Source: Paramicrosporidium saccamoebae KSL3 (Eukaryota > Fungi > Cryptomycota). Taken from it: DNA of 13,554 nucleotides. The DNA lies in assembly GCA_002794465.1 (NCBI GenBank), contig MTSL01000054.1, positions 25,143 to 38,696 of the forward strand, written 5' to 3'. Numbering within the stretch: position 1 is the first letter of the stretch; each line of letters opens with the position of its first letter. Below are positions 4,544 through 12,176 of the stretch, piece by piece. The translations under genes and the position numbers were made by a program. The notes below the pieces were generated by a model. That model saw only the letters and a program-made list of their open reading frames with translations. It did not search any database and was not told the origin of the DNA.

Positions 4544-5267
4544 ATGGTAATTCGCTCCTTTGTGACGACTGATGAGTAGGGTGACAATATTATGGAACTG
4601 AATGGTGGCGCCATTGTGGCAATGGTGGGAAAGAATTGCGTGGCCATTGCATCGGACAAGAGGCTTGGCCAGCAATTCCTGACCCTTTCCACAGAATTCC
4701 CCAAACTGTTCCAGGTAACAGATAGGCTTTACTTTGGACTGGCTGGACTTGCCACCGACGTCCAGACACTGTAAGCAAAGGGTATACAGCAATTAATGTC
4801 CTTTAGTTCCGAGCTGTTCGAGTTTCGCACAAACTTGTACAAGCTGCGCGAGGAACGCGATATCTCACCCAAGGCCTTTGCACATTTGGTCTCCTCCACC
4901 CTCTACGGAAAACGTTTTGGTCCGTACTTTGCAGAGCCGATTTTGGCGGGATTGGGAGGTGCAAAGGGCAATGAGCCGTTCATTTGCTCCATGGATTTAA
5001 TCGGTTGCATCAACTGGGCCAAGGACTTTGTCGTCGCCGGCACCGCTGGTCCTCAGCTCTACGGTATCTGCGAGGCACTCTATGAGCCCAATCTCGAGCC
5101 GGAACAGCTGTTTGAATGTATCTCCCAGTGTCTCCTAAATGCCGTCGATCGGAACGCCCTCAGTGGATGGGGAGCTCTTGTGCATGTCATGTAAGCCCAT
5201 GTCCTATTTGATCTGTAGAACACCGACATCCGTAATTACGCGCACGCTCAAGACCCGTCAAGATTAG
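4544..5267 (+). CDS. PUP3: 20S proteasome subunit beta-3, 208 aa; join(4544..4546,4580..4770,4807..5190,5219..5267)
   Basis: [58 protein letters not shown] and terminal TRTLKTRQD are typical of PSMB3/Pup3. Introns of 33, 36 and 28 nt restore one frame; exon 1 is only the ATG. Confidence 0.97.
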
Positions 5268-5298
5268 GAATTTTAATGCAATAAATGTAGTATTCTCC

Positions 5299-5816
5299 AT
5301 GGCATATGCTCCGCACTCGGTGTACTGGGCGCCCCTACCTCTCATTTCGTACGCCATGTCGTCATCCCCCGCTGATAATCAACAGGTGGATTCTTCCCTT
5401 GGTTGGACACGTGGGGATTACCGACACGGAGGGAAACTTGTACGATTTCGTCGGCAGCTATCGCATCAACGTCAATTCTATGATGTGCGGTCCGCCTGCT
5501 CGAAGGCTTTCATTCCCCTCATATCCGCAGTGGGATTCGGCTGTGCAAAGAGCAAGTGATATCTATGCCGGCCGAGTGCACAATCTCCTGTGGCAGAATT
5601 GCCATTCTCATGTCTGCGAGGCATTGGCGATGGGTACTGGTGAGAGATGGAGCAATTTTAGGCTCTATTATCAAATCCTCCTCCATGGTCAGTCCGTTGG
5701 GTAGAAACCTCTGGGGGTCTGATTACTGTTGTAGGGCATGGGCATTTGTCCGCACTTTTGGTGGCTTCATCGCACTCTGTATTATACTGACATTGGCGTG
5801 GGCGATATGGTTATAA
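5299..5816 (+). CDS. TMEM222: TMEM222/RTE1-like membrane protein (DUF778), 148 aa; join(5299..5348,5386..5700,5735..5816)
   Basis: PHSVYWAPLPLISWILPLVGHVGI, YDFVGSY, WDSAV and HNLLWQNCHSHV, plus a C-terminal TM helix (FGGFIALCIILTLAWAIWL). Introns 5349-5385 (37 nt) and 5701-5734 (34 nt) join the frames. Confidence 0.9.
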
Positions 5817-5839: not shown

Positions 5840-5911
5840 GCCCATTTAGTATAGTGGTAAGTATGTCGCATTGTGGCTGCGCTGACCCAAGTTCGAATCT
5901 TGGAATGGGCA
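5840..5911 (+). tRNA. trnH-GTG: tRNA-His (GTG), intronless
   Basis: Cloverleaf: acceptor GCCCATT/AATGGGC, D-loop AGTGGTAA, anticodon loop TTGTGGC, T-arm CCAAG-TTCGAAT-CTTGG, discriminator A. T-runs follow at 5916-5919 and 5923-5927. Confidence 0.96.
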
Positions 5912-5925
5912 TCTCTTTTGACTTT

Positions 5926-6579
5926 TTAGTTGAGCAACATTTTATTGACAATCCAGCCAACAGACTCGTGGATTCCCTTCCTAGACAGTTAATAACTGAA
6001 CAGAGAGTACCCGTGGAGAGCAGAACAGCTGGCAACTTTGCACTCTCGTGCGCCAATGTCCTCCAAGATGGGATTAAATACTTCCTTTATCCTGGCCACA
6101 AAATCCACATTCTCCTGCAAGTCTTGCTTGTTCACCAGAATCAACACTGGAACACCCGCTAGTCCATCACTCTCGGTCACACCCACAAAGCAGTTACGCA
6201 CTGTCTCGATTCTCTTCCAATCACATCCATCCACGACAAATATAATCCCGTCACTCTCGTCATAGTAATTCTTCCATATGGATTGCAAATTGCCGCCGAG
6301 ATCCCAGAACTTGACTGTAGTGCTCTCAAACGACACAATTGCCACTAAACATGAAATTGAGCACAAATTAGTGCACTATTCATGCCAATTGTGGGAATTG
6401 TTCGCAAGTCTTCAGCTGGAGTGCCCTCTCGTGCTTTAAGTCGTTCCAGCAACGTCTATGATCACAATCACTGACACCAAAGATACAGTCTTGCCTGCTC
6501 CATCTAATCCGAGGATAATTACATTATAGAGTTTGTTCTGCGACCAACGCTCGTATGCTCCAGTAATGAGCGTAAACAT
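5926..6579 (-). CDS. ARFRP1: ADP-ribosylation factor-related protein 1 (Arl3p/ARFRP1), 186 aa; complement(join(5926..5980,6011..6344,6377..6455,6487..6579))
   Basis: MFTLITGAYERW N-terminus (no Gly2, aromatic residue 2, as in Arl3/ARFRP1), G1 GLDGAGKT, PTIGMN, WDLGG, G4 NKQD, IGARECKVASCSALHGKGIHESVGW. Introns of 31, 32 and 30 nt. Confidence 0.93.
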
Positions 6580-6592
6580 CCAACCGGTCTGT

Positions 6593-6619
6593 CCAATAGA
6601 AACTCACCTTTCCTATAAA
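6593..6619 (+). promoter_or_regulatory. CCAAT box + TATA box of RDSRNF peptide gene 1
   Basis: CCAAT 6593-6597; TATAAA 6614-6619, starting 38 nt before ATG 6652. Confidence 0.6.
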
Positions 6620-6651
6620 TAGTCCTTGCAGGTGTCATTGGGCCCTCCAAG

Positions 6652-6810
6652 ATGGCCGACGATATGAAGCAGCCCGTAGGGGTGAACATACAGCCAGCAC
6701 CGACTGCCACCAAAGCAAGCGAAGAGCCAGATCGTGACTCGCGGAACTTTATCACCAAATTCATCTGTCAGGCGTATAAGCCGAAACCTCGTAGGCCGGT
6801 GGGCAACTAA
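6652..6810 (+). CDS. Small hydrophilic protein, 52 aa (RDSRNF family, copy 1)
   Basis: MADDMKQPVGVNIQPAPTATKASEEPDRDSRNFITKFICQAYKPKPRRPVGN*. Below the ORF-track cutoff. Supported by an upstream TATA, a CCAAGATG start context and paralogy to 7129-7314. Confidence 0.72.
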   Translation: MADDMKQPVGVNIQPAPTATKASEEPDRDSRNFITKFICQAYKPKPRRPVGN

Positions 6811-7067
6811 GCGCTACTCTGGGAAAGCCAGGGAAATTAGAGAAATAAAACTGAATCTTTTCTGCATGTCACTGATTAAACAATTATAGAACTGGGGCAG
6901 CAGGCGCTCTAGTAGTCACGCAGAGTTGGCAGGCGAACGTATCGACCCAGCATATAAATATCCAAAGAGAAGGCTGTTGAGGGTGCAGACCTGTTTACGC
7001 TAACTTACCCAGGGATGACTAGATTGTAGTTTCCTTTGGGGTCCCCATTAGTAGGCGATGTGATCAT

Positions 7068-7098
7068 CCAATAATAATAGCCCGCTGCCCCTATAAAA
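7068..7098 (+). promoter_or_regulatory. CCAAT box + TATA box of RDSRNF peptide gene 2
   Basis: CCAAT 7068-7072; TATAAAA 7092-7098, starting 37 nt before ATG 7129. Confidence 0.6.
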
Positions 7099-7128
7099 GG
7101 GCCCGCCGGGAGCATGGGGTCACCCAAG

Positions 7129-7314
7129 ATGACTAACGACAAGAAGCATACCACCCCGGAGACAGAAAATGCGGCTGATGCTAAGCCGGAACAAACTGAG
7201 ACCAAGACAGAGGAAAGGCATAAACCGGAGCAGTACCGTGACTCGCGTAACTTTTCCTCCGAGGTCCATGCCCAGGTGCACAAGCCGAACTTACACAAGC
7301 CGATGAACCATTAG
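7129..7314 (+). CDS. Small hydrophilic protein, 61 aa (RDSRNF family, copy 2)
   Basis: MTNDKKHTTPETENAADAKPEQTETKTEERHKPEQYRDSRNFSSEVHAQVHKPNLHKPMNH*. CGTGACTCGCGTAACTTT matches copy 1 at 17/18 nt. Start 7129 chosen from the CCAAGATG context and TATA spacing; an in-frame ATG at 7114 is an alternative. Confidence 0.78.
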   Translation: MTNDKKHTTPETENAADAKPEQTETKTEERHKPEQYRDSRNFSSEVHAQVHKPNLHKPMNH

Positions 7315-7602
7315 TGCCCCTCTGAGGTTGGATAGATAACCCGAAAGAACTAAGGAAAAATAAATAAATTTAAAGTGTAACGCCTCATTATCTTTTCTAC
7401 GTGCCACCAAGTGATCAGAACTGGAATGACAGCAGCCTTTTTATTATGCAAAGCATGACCATCACACTCTAGATGGGAGCTGCTTTGTGAATTGATGATG
7501 TATGTAATAGTCGGTGTACAGGCCGCGGGCTTTAATAAAAGTCTAATCTAGTCCCACAAAAGGTGCTACTTCCCAGGGCCGCGATTTTCACATGATTTTC
7601 CC

Positions 7603-7867
7603 TTTAATTTGGGACTTTGGGGGCCTAAACGTAGCTGATTGGTCCGCTACGCCACAAAAAGATCATGGGCGATTACAAGGCTACAGCTTTTACCTTATTT
7701 TCACCTTAATTTGGGACTTTGGGGGCTGGAATGCAGCTGATTGGTTCACCATGCCCCAGGGAGATCACAGGCGATATTAAAGCTCCTATCTTCACTTTAG
7801 TTTGGGACTTTGGGGATCCGAATGTAACCGATTGGTCCAACGCGCCACCGGAGGAACGGCTATAAAA
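7603..7867 (+). promoter_or_regulatory. Triplicated promoter module with inverted CCAAT boxes, followed by TATA
   Basis: TTTGGGACTTTGGGG core (GGGAC at 7611, 7713, 7804), each followed 27 nt later by ATTGG (7638, 7740, 7831); TATAAAA at 7861. Confidence 0.8.
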
Positions 7868-7888
7868 TGGGGTCCTAGAAGCCAGAGG

Positions 7889-7923
7889 CAACAGCACAAC
7901 AGCAACAACAACAACAATACAAC
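7889..7923 (+). repeat. (CAA)n-rich tract in the predicted 5' UTR of LEA-A
   Basis: CAACAGCACAACAGCAACAACAACAACAATACAAC directly before ATG 7924. Confidence 0.8.
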
Positions 7924-8328
7924 ATGCTATCTGAAGATCAAACTAGCTACGCAGAGTCGGCCGGCAAGCGCACTGGCGAACTATACGAACAGGCCAAGGG
8001 AAAAGTTGCCCAAGGTGTAGAGGCGACCAAGGGAAAGGCAGTCGAGATCAAGGATGCCGCCATAGAAATGACTAAGGGAGGAGCAGAGAAGGTTAAAGAC
8101 GCCGCACTCGGAGGAGCGGAGAAGGTTAAAGACGTCGCAGTCGCAGCCAAAGATAAAGCAGTCGAGCTCAAGGACTCTGCTGTAGAGAAGACTATGGAAG
8201 GGGCCGAGAAGGTTAAGGACGCAGCAGTCGCAGCCAAGAATCGTGCTGTGGAGGGATGGTCCAAGGGCAAAGGAGAAGAAGAAGGCCGTCAAGAAGTAAA
8301 GAACGATGCCGAAAAGAACTCGTACTAA
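7924..8328 (+). CDS. Group 3 LEA-like protein (LEA-A), 134 aa, intronless
   Basis: A/K/E-rich 11-mer repeats (KVKDAALGGAE, KVKDVAVAAKD, KAVELKDSAVE, KTMEGAEKVKD) resembling the group 3 LEA motif TAQAAKEKAXE. Ends AVEGWSKGK; AATAAA-like signal follows. Confidence 0.88.
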   Translation: MLSEDQTSYAESAGKRTGELYEQAKGKVAQGVEATKGKAVEIKDAAIEMTKGGAEKVKDAALGGAEKVKDVAVAAKDKAVELKDSAVEKTMEGAEKVKDAAVAAKNRAVEGWSKGKGEEEGRQEVKNDAEKNSY

Positions 8329-8761
8329 ATAATTGCAAATAAATATTAGATTCGGCAAACAAATTGTGAGTTCATTGATGAGCCGTTGCTGGCATCTCTG
8401 GTTCATGCTAATGATAAAATCAACATTTACCCACTCATGTCGCGTAGTTAAGAAGATGCCACAGGTAAAGTCGGGCGGGAATAGATGGAAAAACTCGTTC
8501 GCTACCGATCCTAAAATCACAAGGATACAGATCCCACTATTCTTCTCAAACATTCAACTAATCAATCCAGTCCATCTCACAGTTATTTATGATCTCAGTA
8601 AGTCCACTGGCAGCTGATCTGACGAGAATGAACATTCGACTTGGATTCAGATTCAGCTAGTGAAAATTTTGTCCGCACTCTGATTTGCAAGCAAATCGGT
8701 GAAAGACTCATGCCATGCTAAGACTGGTCAATCCAAGGGAGCTAAAGGGATAGAAAGAATT

Positions 8762-8938
8762 ATTGGGCCATTTTCACATTGACGATTGTTCCATTCTCCA
8801 CTAGGGATTGGCCATTGCTCTACAGTAGTAATTGGCCACCTTCCGCCCTGACAATTGGTCGTTCCACAACAACGATTGGTCAATTGTCCACGCCGATGAT
8901 TGGAGGACTTGGAAACACAGGGACAAACAACTATAAAA
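8762..8938 (+). promoter_or_regulatory. Phased array of inverted CCAAT boxes + TATA (LEA-B promoter)
   Basis: ATTGG at 8762, 8807, 8831, 8854, 8875, 8899 and ATTGT at 8785; TATAAAA at 8932, 38 nt before the ATG. Confidence 0.75.
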
Positions 8939-8969
8939 CCACCTCCTGTGCGGTGCCCGTTGTTTCAAC

Positions 8970-9339
8970 ATGTCATCTGGAGGTATGATGGGTGGTCATC
9001 TGGTGCTTAATACAATGTATAGATAAAACTTTTACCGAAACTGCCGCTGAGCGCACTGGCCAAGCCTACGAACAGACCAAGGAGACCCTAGCCAAGGGTG
9101 CCGAGAAAACTAAGGAAGGAGCCATCCAGGCCAAGGACAAGGCGGTCGAACTCAAGGATCAAGCCGTAGAGAAGACCAAGGAGGGAGCAGAGAAGGTCAA
9201 GGACAAGGCGGTTGAACTCAAGGACCAAGCCGCAGAGAGAACCAAGGCGGGAACTGAGAACGCCAAGGAAGGAGCAGCCAAGACCCAGGATCAAGCCGCA
9301 GCGGGGTGGAACAAGGGTAAGCAAGAAGGCGCTAACTAG
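8970..9339 (+). CDS. Group 3 LEA-like protein (LEA-B), 109 aa; join(8970..8982,9023..9339)
   Basis: MSSG|DKTFTETAAERTGQAYEQ..., with 22-mer (2x11) repeats KAVELKDQAVEKTKEGAEKVKD; ends AAAGWNKGKQEGAN. 40-nt intron GTATGA..TAG. Confidence 0.9.
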
Positions 9340-9589
9340 GCGACGCCCAACCAAGCAGAGTCGGAAGTGTAAATAGGTTCAATAAAAAAATCGTGTTCTG
9401 AAGTGAGTCATGCGCCCGAATCAATCAAGTGAATCATGCATCTACGTCAACCAAATGCGTCAATCCAACGTTTATTGTGTTTGGCATGACCAGAACCACG
9501 TCGGTCGTGCGTTAGTCGAGAGATGGAGGGGAAAGTCAAAGACCCACAAGCGGTAGATACTTGGAGAAGTGGTCCTAGTCGGTCCGGCG

Positions 9590-9635
9590 CACGTGATTGG
9601 AGGAAACCGAAACAAGGGGGTAAACATCTATAACA
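9590..9635 (+). promoter_or_regulatory. CACGTG-ATTGG + TATA-like box (LEA-C promoter)
   Basis: CACGTG 9590-9595, ATTGG 9596, TATAACA 9629 (39 nt before ATG). GATTGGAGGA..GAAACA..AAACA.CTATAA is homologous to the LEA-B promoter. Confidence 0.65.
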
Positions 9636-9667
9636 CTGCGACCCCAACGCCCTCTCATTGTTTCATC

Positions 9668-10047
9668 ATGTCATCTGGAGGTAAGCACTGCATACACTTG
9701 ATTTATAATACGATATTTAGATAAAACTAACGTACCCCAAGATCACGGTAAGGCCTGCATCATCACAGCTAACATTCATAGAGCCCTCTCTTCCTGAAAG
9801 ATTCGTTAACTCGGTCAGAGATATAGCCAGTCGCGTTGACTCACACTTAGAGGGTACCGATAAGGACCAACGCACCACTGAAAACGCTGTCGAGTACACG
9901 GGCCCTGTCGATGGACAGGCAAAGGCGGGCTACCCGAAAGGCGCAGATTCAACCAAGGCGCCGGTCGCTGTTGTCAAGGATGATGCCGCACAAGGATACG
10001 CCAAAGGAAAGCAAGAAGGCCACGTGGATGTGGTAAGAAAAAGCTAA
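9668..10047 (+). CDS. Divergent LEA-family paralog (LEA-C), 101 aa; join(9668..9680,9721..9747,9782..10047)
   Basis: Not in the ORF track. First exon ATGTCATCTGGAG is identical to LEA-B. Introns of 40 nt (GTAAGC) and 34 nt (GTAAGG..GCTAAC..TAG). Protein MSSGDKTNVPQDHEPSLPERFVNSVRD...TGPVDGQA...DDAAQGYAKGKQEGHVDVVRKS. Confidence 0.82.
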
Positions 10048-10123
10048 AGCGTGCACTGGTAGCGACTGCAGAAAGAAAAGTAGGTTCAATAAACGTGAAT
10101 TGTTCCTATAAATAAAGTGTAAT

Positions 10124-10260
10124 AGAGTGACTTGCATCAAAGTGAATTGTATTAGGGTGGCTTGTATTAAGGTGAGCTGGTTCAAGTGAATGGTTTCCAT
10201 GCAAGCGGTTCTAGTGTGAATTACTTTGATGTAAATAGTTCCAATGTGAATAGCATTTCT
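10124..10260 (+). repeat. Degenerate 15/30-bp minisatellite downstream of LEA-C
   Basis: GTG-centred units at 10127, 10142, 10157, 10172, 10186 (e.g. AAGTGAATTGTATTA, GGGTGGCTTGTATTA), then GTGAAT at 10216 and 10246. Confidence 0.6.
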
Positions 10261-10504
10261 ATTTTACCATGAGCTAAATTAGGGCTACTTGTGCGCTAAT
10301 CTCCAAAATATTTCAGAACTAAACTATGGCTCGCAACCATTTCAAGAGTTCAGTTGTCGGATTCGCAAGCCAAAGCCCGACAATCCCCTCGGATCGCTGG
10401 AGACACAGAACTTGGCTCTCTGGGCACCGCTGATAGGGAAACTCTGAAACAAGGAGATTGAGACTCATATGGATGCGACTGTAGTAGGGAGCTGATAACC
10501 AAAC

Positions 10505-10922
10505 ATGTCTTCTGAAGGTAACCATCCAAGCATATAATTTCTAATGCAACACATAGATCAGGTTAACACGACCAAAGACCAAAGTAAATCCACAGAGTTA
10601 CAACTAATTTTCAGAGGCCACTCTGCCAGAAAAGGCCAAGGATGCGATTAACGACGTTACCGGGGAAGAAAATGCATCCAAGGACATTCCCGAAAAGGGA
10701 CCGTCTTTAGTAGAAGAAATTGCCGAATTCACGGGACGCCTCTATGGACAAGCAACAACAGTCTTCTCCAAAGGTGCAGAAGCGACGGCAGATGAGACTA
10801 ACAAAATCGCAGCTGAAGTCACCAAAATGAATGACGACGCGGCAAAGGGATGGGCCAAGGGCAAAGAAAAAGGGCACCAAAATGTGGAGGACGGAGAACG
10901 AAGAATGACTCAAGAGGAATGA
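10505..10922 (+). CDS. Divergent LEA-family paralog (LEA-D), 115 aa; join(10505..10517,10557..10583,10615..10922)
   Basis: Not in the ORF track. Same exon sizes as LEA-C (13 + 27 nt); introns of 39 and 31 nt. Protein MSSEDQVNTTKDQKATLPEKAKDAIND...FTGRLYGQATTVFSKGAE...DDAAKGWAKGKEKGHQNVEDGERRMTQEE. Confidence 0.85.
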
Positions 10923-11025
10923 AAATAGGGTAAATAAAGTGTAAAGTGTTCCAACCTAAAACGCGTCTCGGGTTCGACCAATAACGTGTCGATCTAACAG
11001 TTGTGGATATGTGCGCGACAACCCA

Positions 11026-11579
11026 ATGGCACCTGCATCCGACATGAGTGGAACCGCAGCTGCTGAATCCAAAGTCATTGAGAAGCCCGTTAATGTCCCG
11101 GTTGCGGGACAGACTGGGAATCCTGCTACCACTGACCAGCCAGCAATGACCAATTATCTGAACGAATACGTTTCGCAGGCCATTCCCGCTACGAATGAGG
11201 AGCATCAGCAGCCGGCAAAGGATTGTCCCAAAGATTGTCCTAAAGATCGCAAGCCGTTTACACTACGCTCGTTCCTCCATGAGAATGTTAGTCAGGCAAT
11301 CCCCAGGGAAGCGCCACCACGTCGAACAGCGTCAAAGGTAGAGGGACCAGCAGGGTCAGTAGCGCCAGCTAAACCCGCAGAGCCAGAAAAGCCCTTGACG
11401 CAAAAGATTAAAGAAGCATTTACTGGCGGGGAGAAGCAGACAGCCCCACCAAAGGTCGAGGAGAACATCGAAGCGGCAAATGTTGAGAAGGAGGTGGTAA
11501 TGGAAGAGCCAGATGTCCAGGGACCGGGTAAATTTACACCATCTTTATTGACATTATAGATCCTAAGCCCGCAAAGTAG
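11026..11579 (+). CDS. Intrinsically disordered hydrophilin-like protein, ~173 aa; join(11026..11527,11560..11579)
   Basis: P/A/E/K/T-rich. Duplicated motif NYLNEYVSQAIP / SFLHENVSQAIP, KDCP tandem repeat, EKPLTQKIKEAFTGG. A probable 32-nt terminal intron (GTAAAT..TTGAC..TAG) gives the C-terminus PDPKPAK. Confidence 0.8.
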
Positions 11580-11651: not shown

Positions 11652-12176
11652 CTAAATATTACCAATTTGTTCATCGAGATGGCCGATGGCCACCGGCATT
11701 TCACCCTCCAGAATGGACAGTTGACTTTCGAGCCCGAGGAGCTTGGATCGACAATCGTACATGGCCTCGTCCAGGACAGTATGCGAAATTGATTGAGAAA
11801 TTTGAACACTAGTCACATCCTTGGTATCGGGCTCAGGTTCAGGTTCAGAGGAGAGGTCTAATACGCTACTGGTGGGCACTGCTGCCTCGATGCTCGGCTT
11901 GGGCTCTTCATATTTCATGTTTAATAATCCTTCACGTTGTAGGTTCAATTTTGGCGCATTGGCGGGCTTGAACTCTGGCGGCGGGTCTGCCGAAGCACTA
12001 TTCGATGGAGAGCTGTTGCCCGAATCTGAGGTAGGACCAGAGTCAAAAGATGCTTCTTTCTTGATCAACTCGGCAAATTTTTTCGAAAAATCAAAGCGTG
12101 GCGTGTCCTTTTTTTGTTCGCCAGGTCGCACAGTCTTGAGGACCGGACGATACATGTTCTTTTTGAATTGGTCCAT
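11652..12176 (-). CDS. Uncharacterised protein, 174 aa (basic N-terminus, Ser/Pro-rich middle, C-terminal coiled-coil)
   Basis: ATG 12176, TAG 11652-11654; long open frame filling the gap between the island and SNU114. No family recognised. Confidence 0.7.
   Translation of the reverse strand: MDQFKKNMYRPVLKTVRPGEQKKDTPRFDFSKKFAELIKKEASFDSGPTSDSGNSSPSNSASADPPPEFKPANAPKLNLQREGLLNMKYEEPKPSIEAAVPTSSVLDLSSEPEPEPDTKDVTSVQISQSISHTVLDEAMYDCRSKLLGLESQLSILEGEMPVAIGHLDEQIGNI

Follow-up and report, generated by a model that had tools for sequence, protein, structure and literature searches.

Amphipathic repeats of 11 residues are the pattern of group 3 late embryogenesis abundant (LEA) proteins, whose role in desiccation protection is established (PMC6559209, PMC6403280). 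Such proteins occur in plants, nematodes, rotifers, Artemia, and bacteria. Here we describe an island of seven small genes, g1 to g7, in Paramicrosporidium saccamoebae KSL3. It lies in a 13,554-nucleotide (nt) stretch, the window, which is the final 13.5 kb of contig MTSL01000054.1 (38,696 nt; GCA_002794465.1); all positions are those of the window and equal the coordinates of our locus L001 plus 504. Two of the genes, g3 and g4, are like group 3 LEA genes in composition, in amphipathic repeats of 11 or 22 residues, and in homology to a member from an uncultured relative, species B. They differ in falling below the family cutoff. All of the LEA-like members also carry ends of their own (MSS(G/E)D(K/Q)T, encoded across a 13-nt first exon, and a GWxKGKxEG that includes Trp), and g5 and g6 have lost, or never had, the repeats.

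Three other systems invite comparison. Hydrophilins, among them those of fungal conidia, share the strong hydrophilicity of all seven products, and g4 and g6 fall within the hydrophilin definition; however, g3 and g5 miss it on hydropathy and g1, g2, and g7 on glycine, and no named family is matched in Pfam. The tardigrade CAHS, SAHS, and MAHS proteins are likewise small, disordered, clade-confined families, unrelated to one another and tandemly duplicated, for which protection in dormancy has been proposed. They have no sequence relation to the island, whose families are linked in one syntenic interval, and their function is backed by experiment whereas that of the island is inferred. Apolipoproteins and alpha-synuclein share an 11-residue periodicity and give weak Pfam matches of 15 to 24 bits; these lie far below the cutoffs, composition and C-terminal motif differ, and the island proteins, unlike apolipoproteins, have no signal peptide.

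P. saccamoebae is an intranuclear parasite of Saccamoeba with a 7.3-Mb genome of 3750 genes and resting spores of ~1 µm that contain a polar filament (PMC5701793). Its published DNA and poly(A) RNA came from resting spores (PMC5701793; Quandt et al. 2017, eLife 6:e29594). An initial reading of the window, made from the letters alone (the sequence-only reading), had rightly surmised a compact, probably parasitic genome (PMC5701793). The species is placed in Rozellomycota, sister to Microsporidia. Microsporidia-like parasites persist outside their hosts as spores, and to our knowledge the molecules that keep the cytoplasm of a dry or frozen spore viable are largely unknown. A search of the literature found no paper mentioning LEA proteins with rozellids and none linking LEA proteins to microsporidia themselves.

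Results

Seven genes conserved in place

Between an Arf-family GTPase gene and the pair hyp174/SNU114 lie seven co-oriented small genes (6652-11579, +). Their products, of 52 to 167 amino acids (aa), are hydrophilic and have no signal peptide or membrane segment. The genes stand 103 to 655 nt apart, compared with 4 to 228 nt among the flanking genes, so the wider spacing described by the sequence-only reading is real. That reading had also placed seven small, hydrophilic, co-oriented genes between ARFRP1 and the SNU114 pair. Gene models, ratios of nonsynonymous to synonymous substitution (dN/dS), and synteny all confirm this; the strand given for SNU114 had to be corrected, SNU114/EFTUD2 being on the plus strand.

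For comparison we used contigs from five uncultured species, A to E, found via protein databases. Species A (JGI 3300042204), with an Arf core 93% identical to that of P. saccamoebae, has the neighborhood spread over three contigs. L003 carries an RTE1-like gene, tRNA-His, Arf (-), a g1 orthologue, and two LEA-like genes, LEAa and LEAb, both with an intron after codon 4, the same position as in g4; g2 is absent between g1 and LEAa. On L002 there is a g6 orthologue that has both introns as well as the micro-exon described below; L004 contains a g7 orthologue, hyp174 (-), and the beginning of SNU114. In species B (L005, a 42-kb contig; Arf 71% identical), the whole neighborhood is present in the same order: V-ATPase E, TRAPPC13, proteasome, Arf, island, hyp174, EFTUD2. 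Its island consists of four plus-strand genes: a g1-type gene, an 11-mer LEA gene, a g6-type gene, and a g7-type gene. Species C (L008; Arf 52% identical) has only the g6-type and g7-type genes. Species D (L010) shows Arf, a g1-type gene, and a g6-type gene, and species E (L011) the tail of a g4-like gene, a g5 orthologue (P0008), and the start of a g6 orthologue. Hence, the synteny check proposed for the ARFRP1-SNU114 interval returned a cluster in the same place in uncultured species A to E, with a copy number that varies from two (C) through four (B) to seven (P. saccamoebae). Scans of metagenome contigs with a protein pattern and with a degenerate DNA pattern for the GWAKGK block gave no match, and exact-protein lookups of g1, g3, and TRAPPC13 returned no record.

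Coding constraint was evident throughout. The g1 orthologue P0004 is 69% identical, with a dN/dS of 0.16; the ratio was 0.39 for g6 against its L002 orthologue and 0.14 to 0.31 for g3 and g4 against LEAa and LEAb. Between island paralogues it ranged from 0.22 to 0.37 (g1-g2, 0.37; g5-g6, 0.33), and the controls gave 0.13 (Arf) and 0.07 (RTE1-like). The g7 orthologue P0006 is 59 to 64% identical; it and the g7 proteins of species B (184 aa) and species C (141 aa) are all encoded in the corresponding slot ahead of hyp174/SNU114. Thus, all of g1 to g7 show a dN/dS of 0.14 to 0.39 or have orthologues in uncultured relatives. We conclude that the island genes are under purifying selection and syntenic in five relatives, and that g1 to g7 are real, paralogous, clustered genes. 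The possibility that they are spurious open reading frames (ORFs) is ruled out by dN/dS and synteny. Two long antisense ORFs opposite g3 (7981-8553, -, 190 aa; 7947-8270, -, 107 aa) were rejected as by-products of a repetitive, purine-skewed coding strand.

The genes fall into four families: g3 with g4, g5 with g6, g1 with g2, and g7. Taken together, the island is a conserved, tandemly expanded cluster encoding small, cytosolic, probably intrinsically disordered proteins.

g3 and g4 descend from an LEA_4 gene

g3 (7924-8328, +; 134 aa) is intronless and consists of 11-mer repeats followed by a C-terminal GWSKGKGEEEG and then a tail. g4 (8970-8982 joined to 9023-9339, +; 109 aa) has 22-mer repeats, a 40-nt phase-1 intron, and the C terminus AAAGWNKGKQEGAN. 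In the DNA, these repeats appear as a 33-nt tandem repeat in g3 and a 66-nt tandem repeat, present 2.3 to 2.6 times, in g4. Residue autocorrelation of the two proteins peaks at lags 7, 11, 15, 22, and 29 (z up to 9; lags 7, 22, and 29 in g3; for lag 22 in g4, z is 9), the hydrophobic moment peaks at 100 degrees, and both proteins are rich in Ala, Lys, Glu, and Gly.

Are these true LEA proteins? The Pfam LEA_4 model (PF02987) has a gathering threshold of 51.1 bits, and we considered Pfam hits at E ≤1. The proposed check of the island against LEA_4, HSP9_HSP12, and Dehydrin failed, in that no g1 to g7 protein passes; nor did any of them match HSP9_HSP12, dehydrin, Con-6, or another fungal spore hydrophilin. 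LEAa and LEAb of species A, at 17 and 13.9 bits on LEA_4, also stay below the threshold. The protein in the same slot of species B, in contrast, scores 92.6 bits, above it. This protein contains eight copies of TKEKAEQVKDA and ends in AAEGFQKGKE, and in BLASTP with compositional adjustment it is matched by g3 (E 2e-6) and g4 (E 8e-6), the C-terminal motif included. Because this syntenic LEA_4 member matches both proteins, we take g3 and g4 to be its diverged relatives, descended from a true LEA_4 gene. The sequence comparison thus supports their LEA link indirectly, though the family threshold was not reached.

Repeats of this kind have other owners. Amphipathic 11-mers are also found in apolipoproteins and synucleins, and g4 has weak Pfam matches below the cutoff to apolipoprotein, YtxH, and synuclein families. 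Perhaps the island proteins act on lipids and membranes, like exchangeable apolipoproteins, perilipins, and synucleins, coating lipid droplets or membranes, whether those of the developing spore, the polaroplast included, or those of the host nucleus, and are not desiccation protectants at all? The strong amphipathic moment at 100 degrees and the long predicted helices would suit such a role, as would the subthreshold matches to Apolipoprotein A1/A4/E, ApoLp-III, Synuclein, and YtxH obtained with g4 and with the g6-type and LEA-type proteins of relatives. However, all of these matches are far below their cutoffs, and only LEA_4 passes, in species B. No lipid-related genes lie nearby. In addition, this explanation overlaps with desiccation protection, since LEA_4 proteins themselves bind membranes on drying. 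We consider a purely lipid-directed function unlikely.

g5 and g6 form a nonrepeat sister family

g5 (9668-9680, 9721-9747, and 9782-10047, +; 101 aa) and g6 (10505-10517, 10557-10583, and 10615-10922, +; 115 aa) are each built from three exons, of which the second is a 27-nt micro-exon. Both encode g6-type proteins without 11-mer repeats. Their kinship with g3 and g4 shows in a TG..Y.Q block, a C-terminal GWxKGKxEG block, and a 3' motif common to all four genes. The blocks shared with g3 and g4 can be extended to TG..Y.Q..K..KGAE.T and to a C-terminal AAxGWxKGKxEG, and g6 matches g4 in BLASTP (E 2e-4) in two short stretches. The 13-nt first exon (ATGTCNTCTGRAG) and the position and phase of the intron behind it are also shared by g5 and g6 with the LEA-type genes, g3 itself being intronless.

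The sequence-only reading had counted four LEA-family paralogs and had pointed to group 3 LEA proteins with 11-mer repeats. The paralogy stands, as does, indirectly, the LEA descent of g3 and g4, but none of the four reaches the LEA_4 cutoff, g5 and g6 are a separate family, and the repeats are confined to g3 and g4, there being no significant periodicity in g5 or g6.

The domain that defines this second family reads TLPEK...EEIAEFTGRLYGQA..FSKGAE.T...AAKGWAKGKEKG in g6 and has no Pfam model. A profile built from the four LEA-like paralogues matched just two of 5.8 billion proteins, one of them PSACC_00672, the public model of g6. A g6-type profile found 12 among 1.84 billion representative proteins, nearly all of them small environmental proteins with the core TLPEK..TGEED..K.IPEK..SF.EE..E(F/Y)(T/A)GR(L/V)YGQ.K..FS.G..TT. 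AlphaFold2, run on g6 with the family alignment, returned three long helices at a mean predicted local distance difference test score (pLDDT) of 52.6, a model in keeping with a disordered protein that is prone to helix formation.

g1/g2 and g7 are lineage-restricted families

g1 (6652-6810, +) encodes a basic peptide of 52 aa (pI 9.4) with a conserved C-terminal block, RDSRNFITKFICQAYKPKPRRP, and g2 (7129-7314, +; 61 aa) is its paralogue. Both contain an invariant RDSRNF motif, as the sequence-only reading had noticed. The family motif is (S/D)SRNF(I/V)xKFICQ(A/S)(Y/F), which widens to (S/D)(S/R)(R/S)(N/D)F(I/V)xK(F/Y)(I/L)(C/F)Q(A/S)(Y/F) when species A, B, and D are included; in these three species the g1-type gene adjoins Arf. 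g7 (11044-11527 joined to 11560-11579, +) encodes a proline-rich, probably disordered protein of 167 aa in which the motifs NYLNEYVSQAIP, PFTLRSFLHENVSQAIPREAPP, and LTQKIKEAFTGGEKQTAP are conserved, with orthologues in species A, B, and C. Neither g1 and g2 nor g5 and g7 matched a Pfam family, and profile searches of the PDB with three families gave no meaningful matches. Hence, the earlier claim of at least two unrecognized peptide families is upheld by g1/g2 and g7. From the sequences, both are lineage-restricted families whose orthologues occur only in uncultured relatives.

A resemblance between g1/g2 and g7 through xNF(I/L)xK(F/Y)(I/V)xQA was considered and rejected as unproven: hhalign picks that alignment at a probability of 1.6%, and a position-specific scoring matrix (PSSM) test of the motif gave P values of 0.014 to 0.06 for three sequences and 0.76 for species B.

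Sharp motifs raise the question of binding partners. The linear motifs of g1/g2 and g7 could bind and silence ribosomes or other spore complexes, which would make these proteins dormancy factors analogous, not homologous, to microsporidian MDF1, MDF2, and Lso2. g1 is basic, its 25-residue C terminus is nearly invariant at a dN/dS of 0.16, and g1-type genes occur in four species; g7 sets three sharp, short motifs amid variable sequence, a pattern that suits partner binding over bulk protection. On the other hand, PDB chains, ribosome-bound and hibernation factors included, showed no similarity at E values up to 10, and the motif that might join g1 to g7 gives a weak link (hhalign, 1.6%; PSSM P, 0.01 to 0.76). 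We give such machine-directed silencing only a slim chance.

Physical character of the island proteins

Values for the grand average of hydropathy (GRAVY) of g1 to g7 range from -0.72 to -1.85, against -0.3 to +0.1 for their neighbors. We applied the hydrophilin criteria of Garay-Arroyo et al. (2000), Gly above 6% and a hydrophilicity index above 1, the latter as a mean hydropathy below -1. Both hold for g4 (GRAVY -1.24; Gly, 9.2%) and g6 (-1.08; 7.8%). g3 (-0.82; 10.4%) and g5 (-0.96; 8.9%) narrowly miss on hydropathy, and Gly is too low in g1 (3.8%), g2 (1.5%), and g7 (5.1%; hydropathy, -0.72). The hydrophilin label given to the whole island thus holds in that each of the seven proteins greatly exceeds its neighbors in hydrophilicity, but in its strict sense it applies to g4 and g6 only.

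Lineage-restricted, fast-evolving, repetitive, clustered genes also encode the microsporidian polar tube proteins PTP1 and PTP2, and the island genes have these properties; g7 is, in addition, proline-rich. We therefore considered whether they might be secreted effectors or else structural components of the spore wall or polar filament. However, the island proteins have no signal peptide, almost no cysteine, and no hydrophobic segment, the highest 15-residue Kyte-Doolittle mean being ≤0.65. For want of any hydrophobic segment, we discarded a secreted or spore wall role, which we regard as very improbable indeed.

Promoters of the island genes

The promoter of g1 (6593-6651, +) fits in the 72-nt gap between the divergent ATG codons of Arf (6579) and g1 and contains CCAAT at 6593-6597 (-59), TATAAAT at 6614-6620 (-38), and ATTGG at 6637-6641; in species A (L003), the elements lie at the same distances. 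g2 (+) has CCAAT at -61 and TATAAAA at -37 relative to ATG 7129. The g3 promoter (7586-7867, +) consists of three direct repeats of ~91 to 102 nt (7586-7851) followed by TATAAAA at 7861 (-63); each repeat includes TTGGGACTTTGG and an NF-Y-type CCAAT box (GATTGGT), giving three matches where 0.15 is expected. In the g4 promoter (8762-8938, +), six ATTGG (inverted CCAAT) within 8762-8903, ~21 to 45 nt apart, precede TATAAAA at 8932 (-38). g5 (+) has ATTGG at -72 and TATAAC at -39. g6 (+) shows no canonical CCAAT or TATA; it has a conserved CATATG at -39 and a CCAAT box decayed to GATAGG that is intact in species E. g7 (+) has CCAAT at -66 and ATATGT at -37. The looser TATA-like patterns of g6 and g7 were chosen after seeing the data.

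A TATAA sequence is thus present at five of the seven island genes (at -37 to -39 in g1, g2, g4, and g5 and at -63 in g3) and upstream of none of nine flanking genes. Under a uniform model, the chance of at least four of seven at -37 to -40 is ~1e-8, a figure inflated by paralogy, because g1/g2 and g4/g5 are duplicated units and not independent events. TATA boxes ~37 to 39 nt before the ATG imply very short leaders. CCAAT or ATTGG occurs at -59 to -93 for g1 to g5, and island intergenic DNA contains 15 copies where 5.2 are expected (P = 0.0005); four of the five NF-Y-type matches in the window are at g3 and g4. Since a single CCAAT is also found at flanking genes, the island is set apart only by its TATA boxes and by the multiplication of CCAAT. 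The shared CCAAT/TATA layout described earlier therefore stands for TATA, found at g1 to g5 and absent at their neighbors, and does not stand as an island-specific property of CCAAT, or for g6, which lacks both boxes. The repeat-rich promoters described with it are plainly there, in the three units of ~100 nt at g3 and the six ATTGG at g4. The TATA/CCAAT layout is retained in species A, B, and C, which argues for constraint.

Could the proteins nevertheless be general stress or housekeeping disordered proteins, for example chaperone-like or nucleic acid binding, expressed throughout life or during intranuclear growth, with clustering a by-product of duplication? Duplication of whole units explains shared promoter features, CCAAT is common in the genome, and the island has no codon bias. 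However, four families are kept together across species whose Arf cores are 52 to 93% identical, and TATA, which relatives retain, occurs upstream of island genes alone; in yeast, promoters with a TATA box typically belong to regulated or stress genes. A housekeeping role therefore seems improbable to us.

Some further sequence features were noted in this DNA. The g3 promoter repeat (TTGGGACTTTGG ... GCTGATTGGTTCACCA) is recognizable upstream of the g7 orthologue of species A (L004, ~285-325), with no LEA gene following within the contig. A long inverted repeat at the start of L004 (~75-115 and 225-265), also upstream of that orthologue, could be a small mobile element or an assembly artifact. 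Between the g5 poly(A) signals and g6, five same-strand GTGAAT occur in 157 nt (10095-10251, +; spacing, 47, 44, 30, and 30 nt). Only 11 copies are present in the window as a whole, both strands counted, and the cluster could be an upstream element of g6, which is without a CCAAT box. A scan for bacterial promoters and terminators, irrelevant to a eukaryote, found nothing above chance. Codon usage and third-position GC content (GC3) of the island gave no sign of foreign origin.

Transcription units and gene models

An AATAAA lies 10 to 45 nt past the stop codon of each of g1 to g6, and at 10 nt for g3, which has its own stop; therefore, g3 and g4 are separate transcription units. After g4, the poly(A) signal and a motif upstream of it form the 3' element (A/G)TAGGTTCAATAAA (9371-9386, within 9365-9394), which recurs after g5 (10078-10093) and g6 (10923-10938). 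It is also present 3' of orthologues (L002, ~620-640; L011, ~60-75 and 675-690) and so exceeds a bare poly(A) signal. We conclude that each island gene is its own transcription unit.

These models, obtained by splicing the sequence at GT..AG introns of 31 to 40 nt, depart from the public annotation at several points. The latter has no model for g1 or g5, treats g3 and g4 as a single gene with a 290-aa product (7924-9339), and in PSACC_00672 (106 aa) skips the 27-nt micro-exon of g6. Species B has an intronless g6-type gene that encodes the micro-exon residues, and the g5 orthologue of species E has no intron 1 and reads continuously as MSSGDRTNANQDH. Because relatives without these introns encode them unbroken, the micro-exons of g5 and g6 are coding. 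Between P. saccamoebae and its relatives, intron positions are kept and intron sequences have diverged. The terminal g7 introns of two species differ by 2 nt, with the spliced tail preserved (DPKPAK or DPMPAK). Presence of introns varies: g3 lacks the one that follows the 13-nt first exon in g4 to g6, and g1 of P. saccamoebae is without the 13-nt first exon and intron with which the g1-type genes begin in species B and D.

Public models start g2 at ATG 7114 and g7 at ATG 11026, both in frame and upstream of the starts used here. ATG 7114 is 15 nt upstream of 7129 and only ~22 nt past the g2 TATA box, and ATG 11026 is ATA in species A, where the start at 11044 is conserved. Both are unlikely starts, being not conserved and too near the TATA element. 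The public Arf model (5989-6764, -) begins at 6764 and overlaps g1. Because the N terminus MFTLITGAYERW, encoded from 6579, is conserved in all five relatives, the true Arf start is 6579.

Neighboring genes

Upstream of the island, a tRNA-His (GTG) gene (5840-5911, +) lies between the RTE1-like and Arf genes, an arrangement kept together with its sequence in species A (L003, ~540-610). The RTE1-like/TMEM222 gene (ORF 5306-5704; Pfam PF05608, 82 bits) is without a public model of its own, and the public proteasome subunit model (4592-5559, 279 aa) appears to run into it in another frame. Downstream, hyp174 (11652-12176, -) is convergent to g7, conserved, and disordered looking, with no Pfam match. 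Species A, B, and C share its conserved N terminus, MDQFKK.YRPVLKTVRPGE, and the relatives carry Ser/Thr-rich repeat expansions.

Discussion

What might such a cluster do for the parasite? We hold it an even call that the island encodes LEA-type protectants of the resting spore, acting in desiccation and dormancy. This reading of the sequences draws on the LEA_4 descent of g3 and g4, the hydrophilicity and probable disorder of all seven products, the regulated TATA-type promoters, and the keeping together of four families down to 52% Arf identity, in an organism that depends on free resting spores. Under it, the TATA-type promoters would drive strong, stage-specific expression during spore formation, and the proteins would accumulate in the resting spore as LEA-type protectants. 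As water is lost, they would fold into amphipathic helices that shield proteins and membranes, and they may help the cytoplasm to vitrify, which would let the free spore withstand drying and freezing on its way from one host to the next.

Several observations weigh against spore protection. g3 scores 18.1 bits on LEA_4, short of 51.1, and g4, g5, and g6 have no LEA_4 match at E ≤1. Apart from g3 and g4, none of the island proteins (g1, g2, g5, g6, and g7) matches a stress protein family in Pfam, and the strict hydrophilin criteria fit only g4 and g6. Because 11-mer repeats are shared with apolipoproteins and synucleins, to which there are weak subthreshold matches, a lipid or membrane role unrelated to drying is possible. 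About half of the flanking housekeeping genes have CCAAT boxes upstream as well, and the shared promoter layout was partly inherited through tandem duplication. Codon usage and GC3 are the same as in the flanks and give no sign of very high expression, although they are uninformative as a proxy for it. Finally, stage specificity and protection are themselves matters of inference.

A bolder version is possible, and we put it forward tentatively, as the less probable outcome. The Arf-SNU114 interval may be a dedicated dormancy island of the Paramicrosporidium clade, in which an ancestral pair of g6-type and g7-type genes recruited LEA_4 and short basic peptide genes and expanded to seven. A common, sporulation-specific TATA/CCAAT (NF-Y-type) program would control it, and its products would be chiefly responsible for vitrifying the cytoplasm and silencing the cell machinery in microsporidia-like spores. 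If this is true, the three families that lack a Pfam model would represent novel classes of proteins for anhydrobiosis or dormancy, equipped with specific binding motifs.

Neither LEA_4 proteins nor tandem families of disordered protectants are new as a kind. What is new here is the presence of LEA-type genes in a lineage sister to Microsporidia, with three companion families that have no Pfam match, in a syntenic island of two, four, or seven genes, together with the corrected gene models. The latter reveal systematic errors in a reference genome, in which small genes were missed, a gene pair was fused, a 27-nt micro-exon was skipped, and the Arf model was extended too far. Three short disordered-protein families without a Pfam model are added, and at this locus an LEA_4 gene has decayed until it is no longer detectable, although its genomic slot and its terminal motifs have been kept. 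For the biology of these parasites, the locus supplies a concrete, conserved set of candidates for spore survival, which existing spore RNA-seq could test directly.

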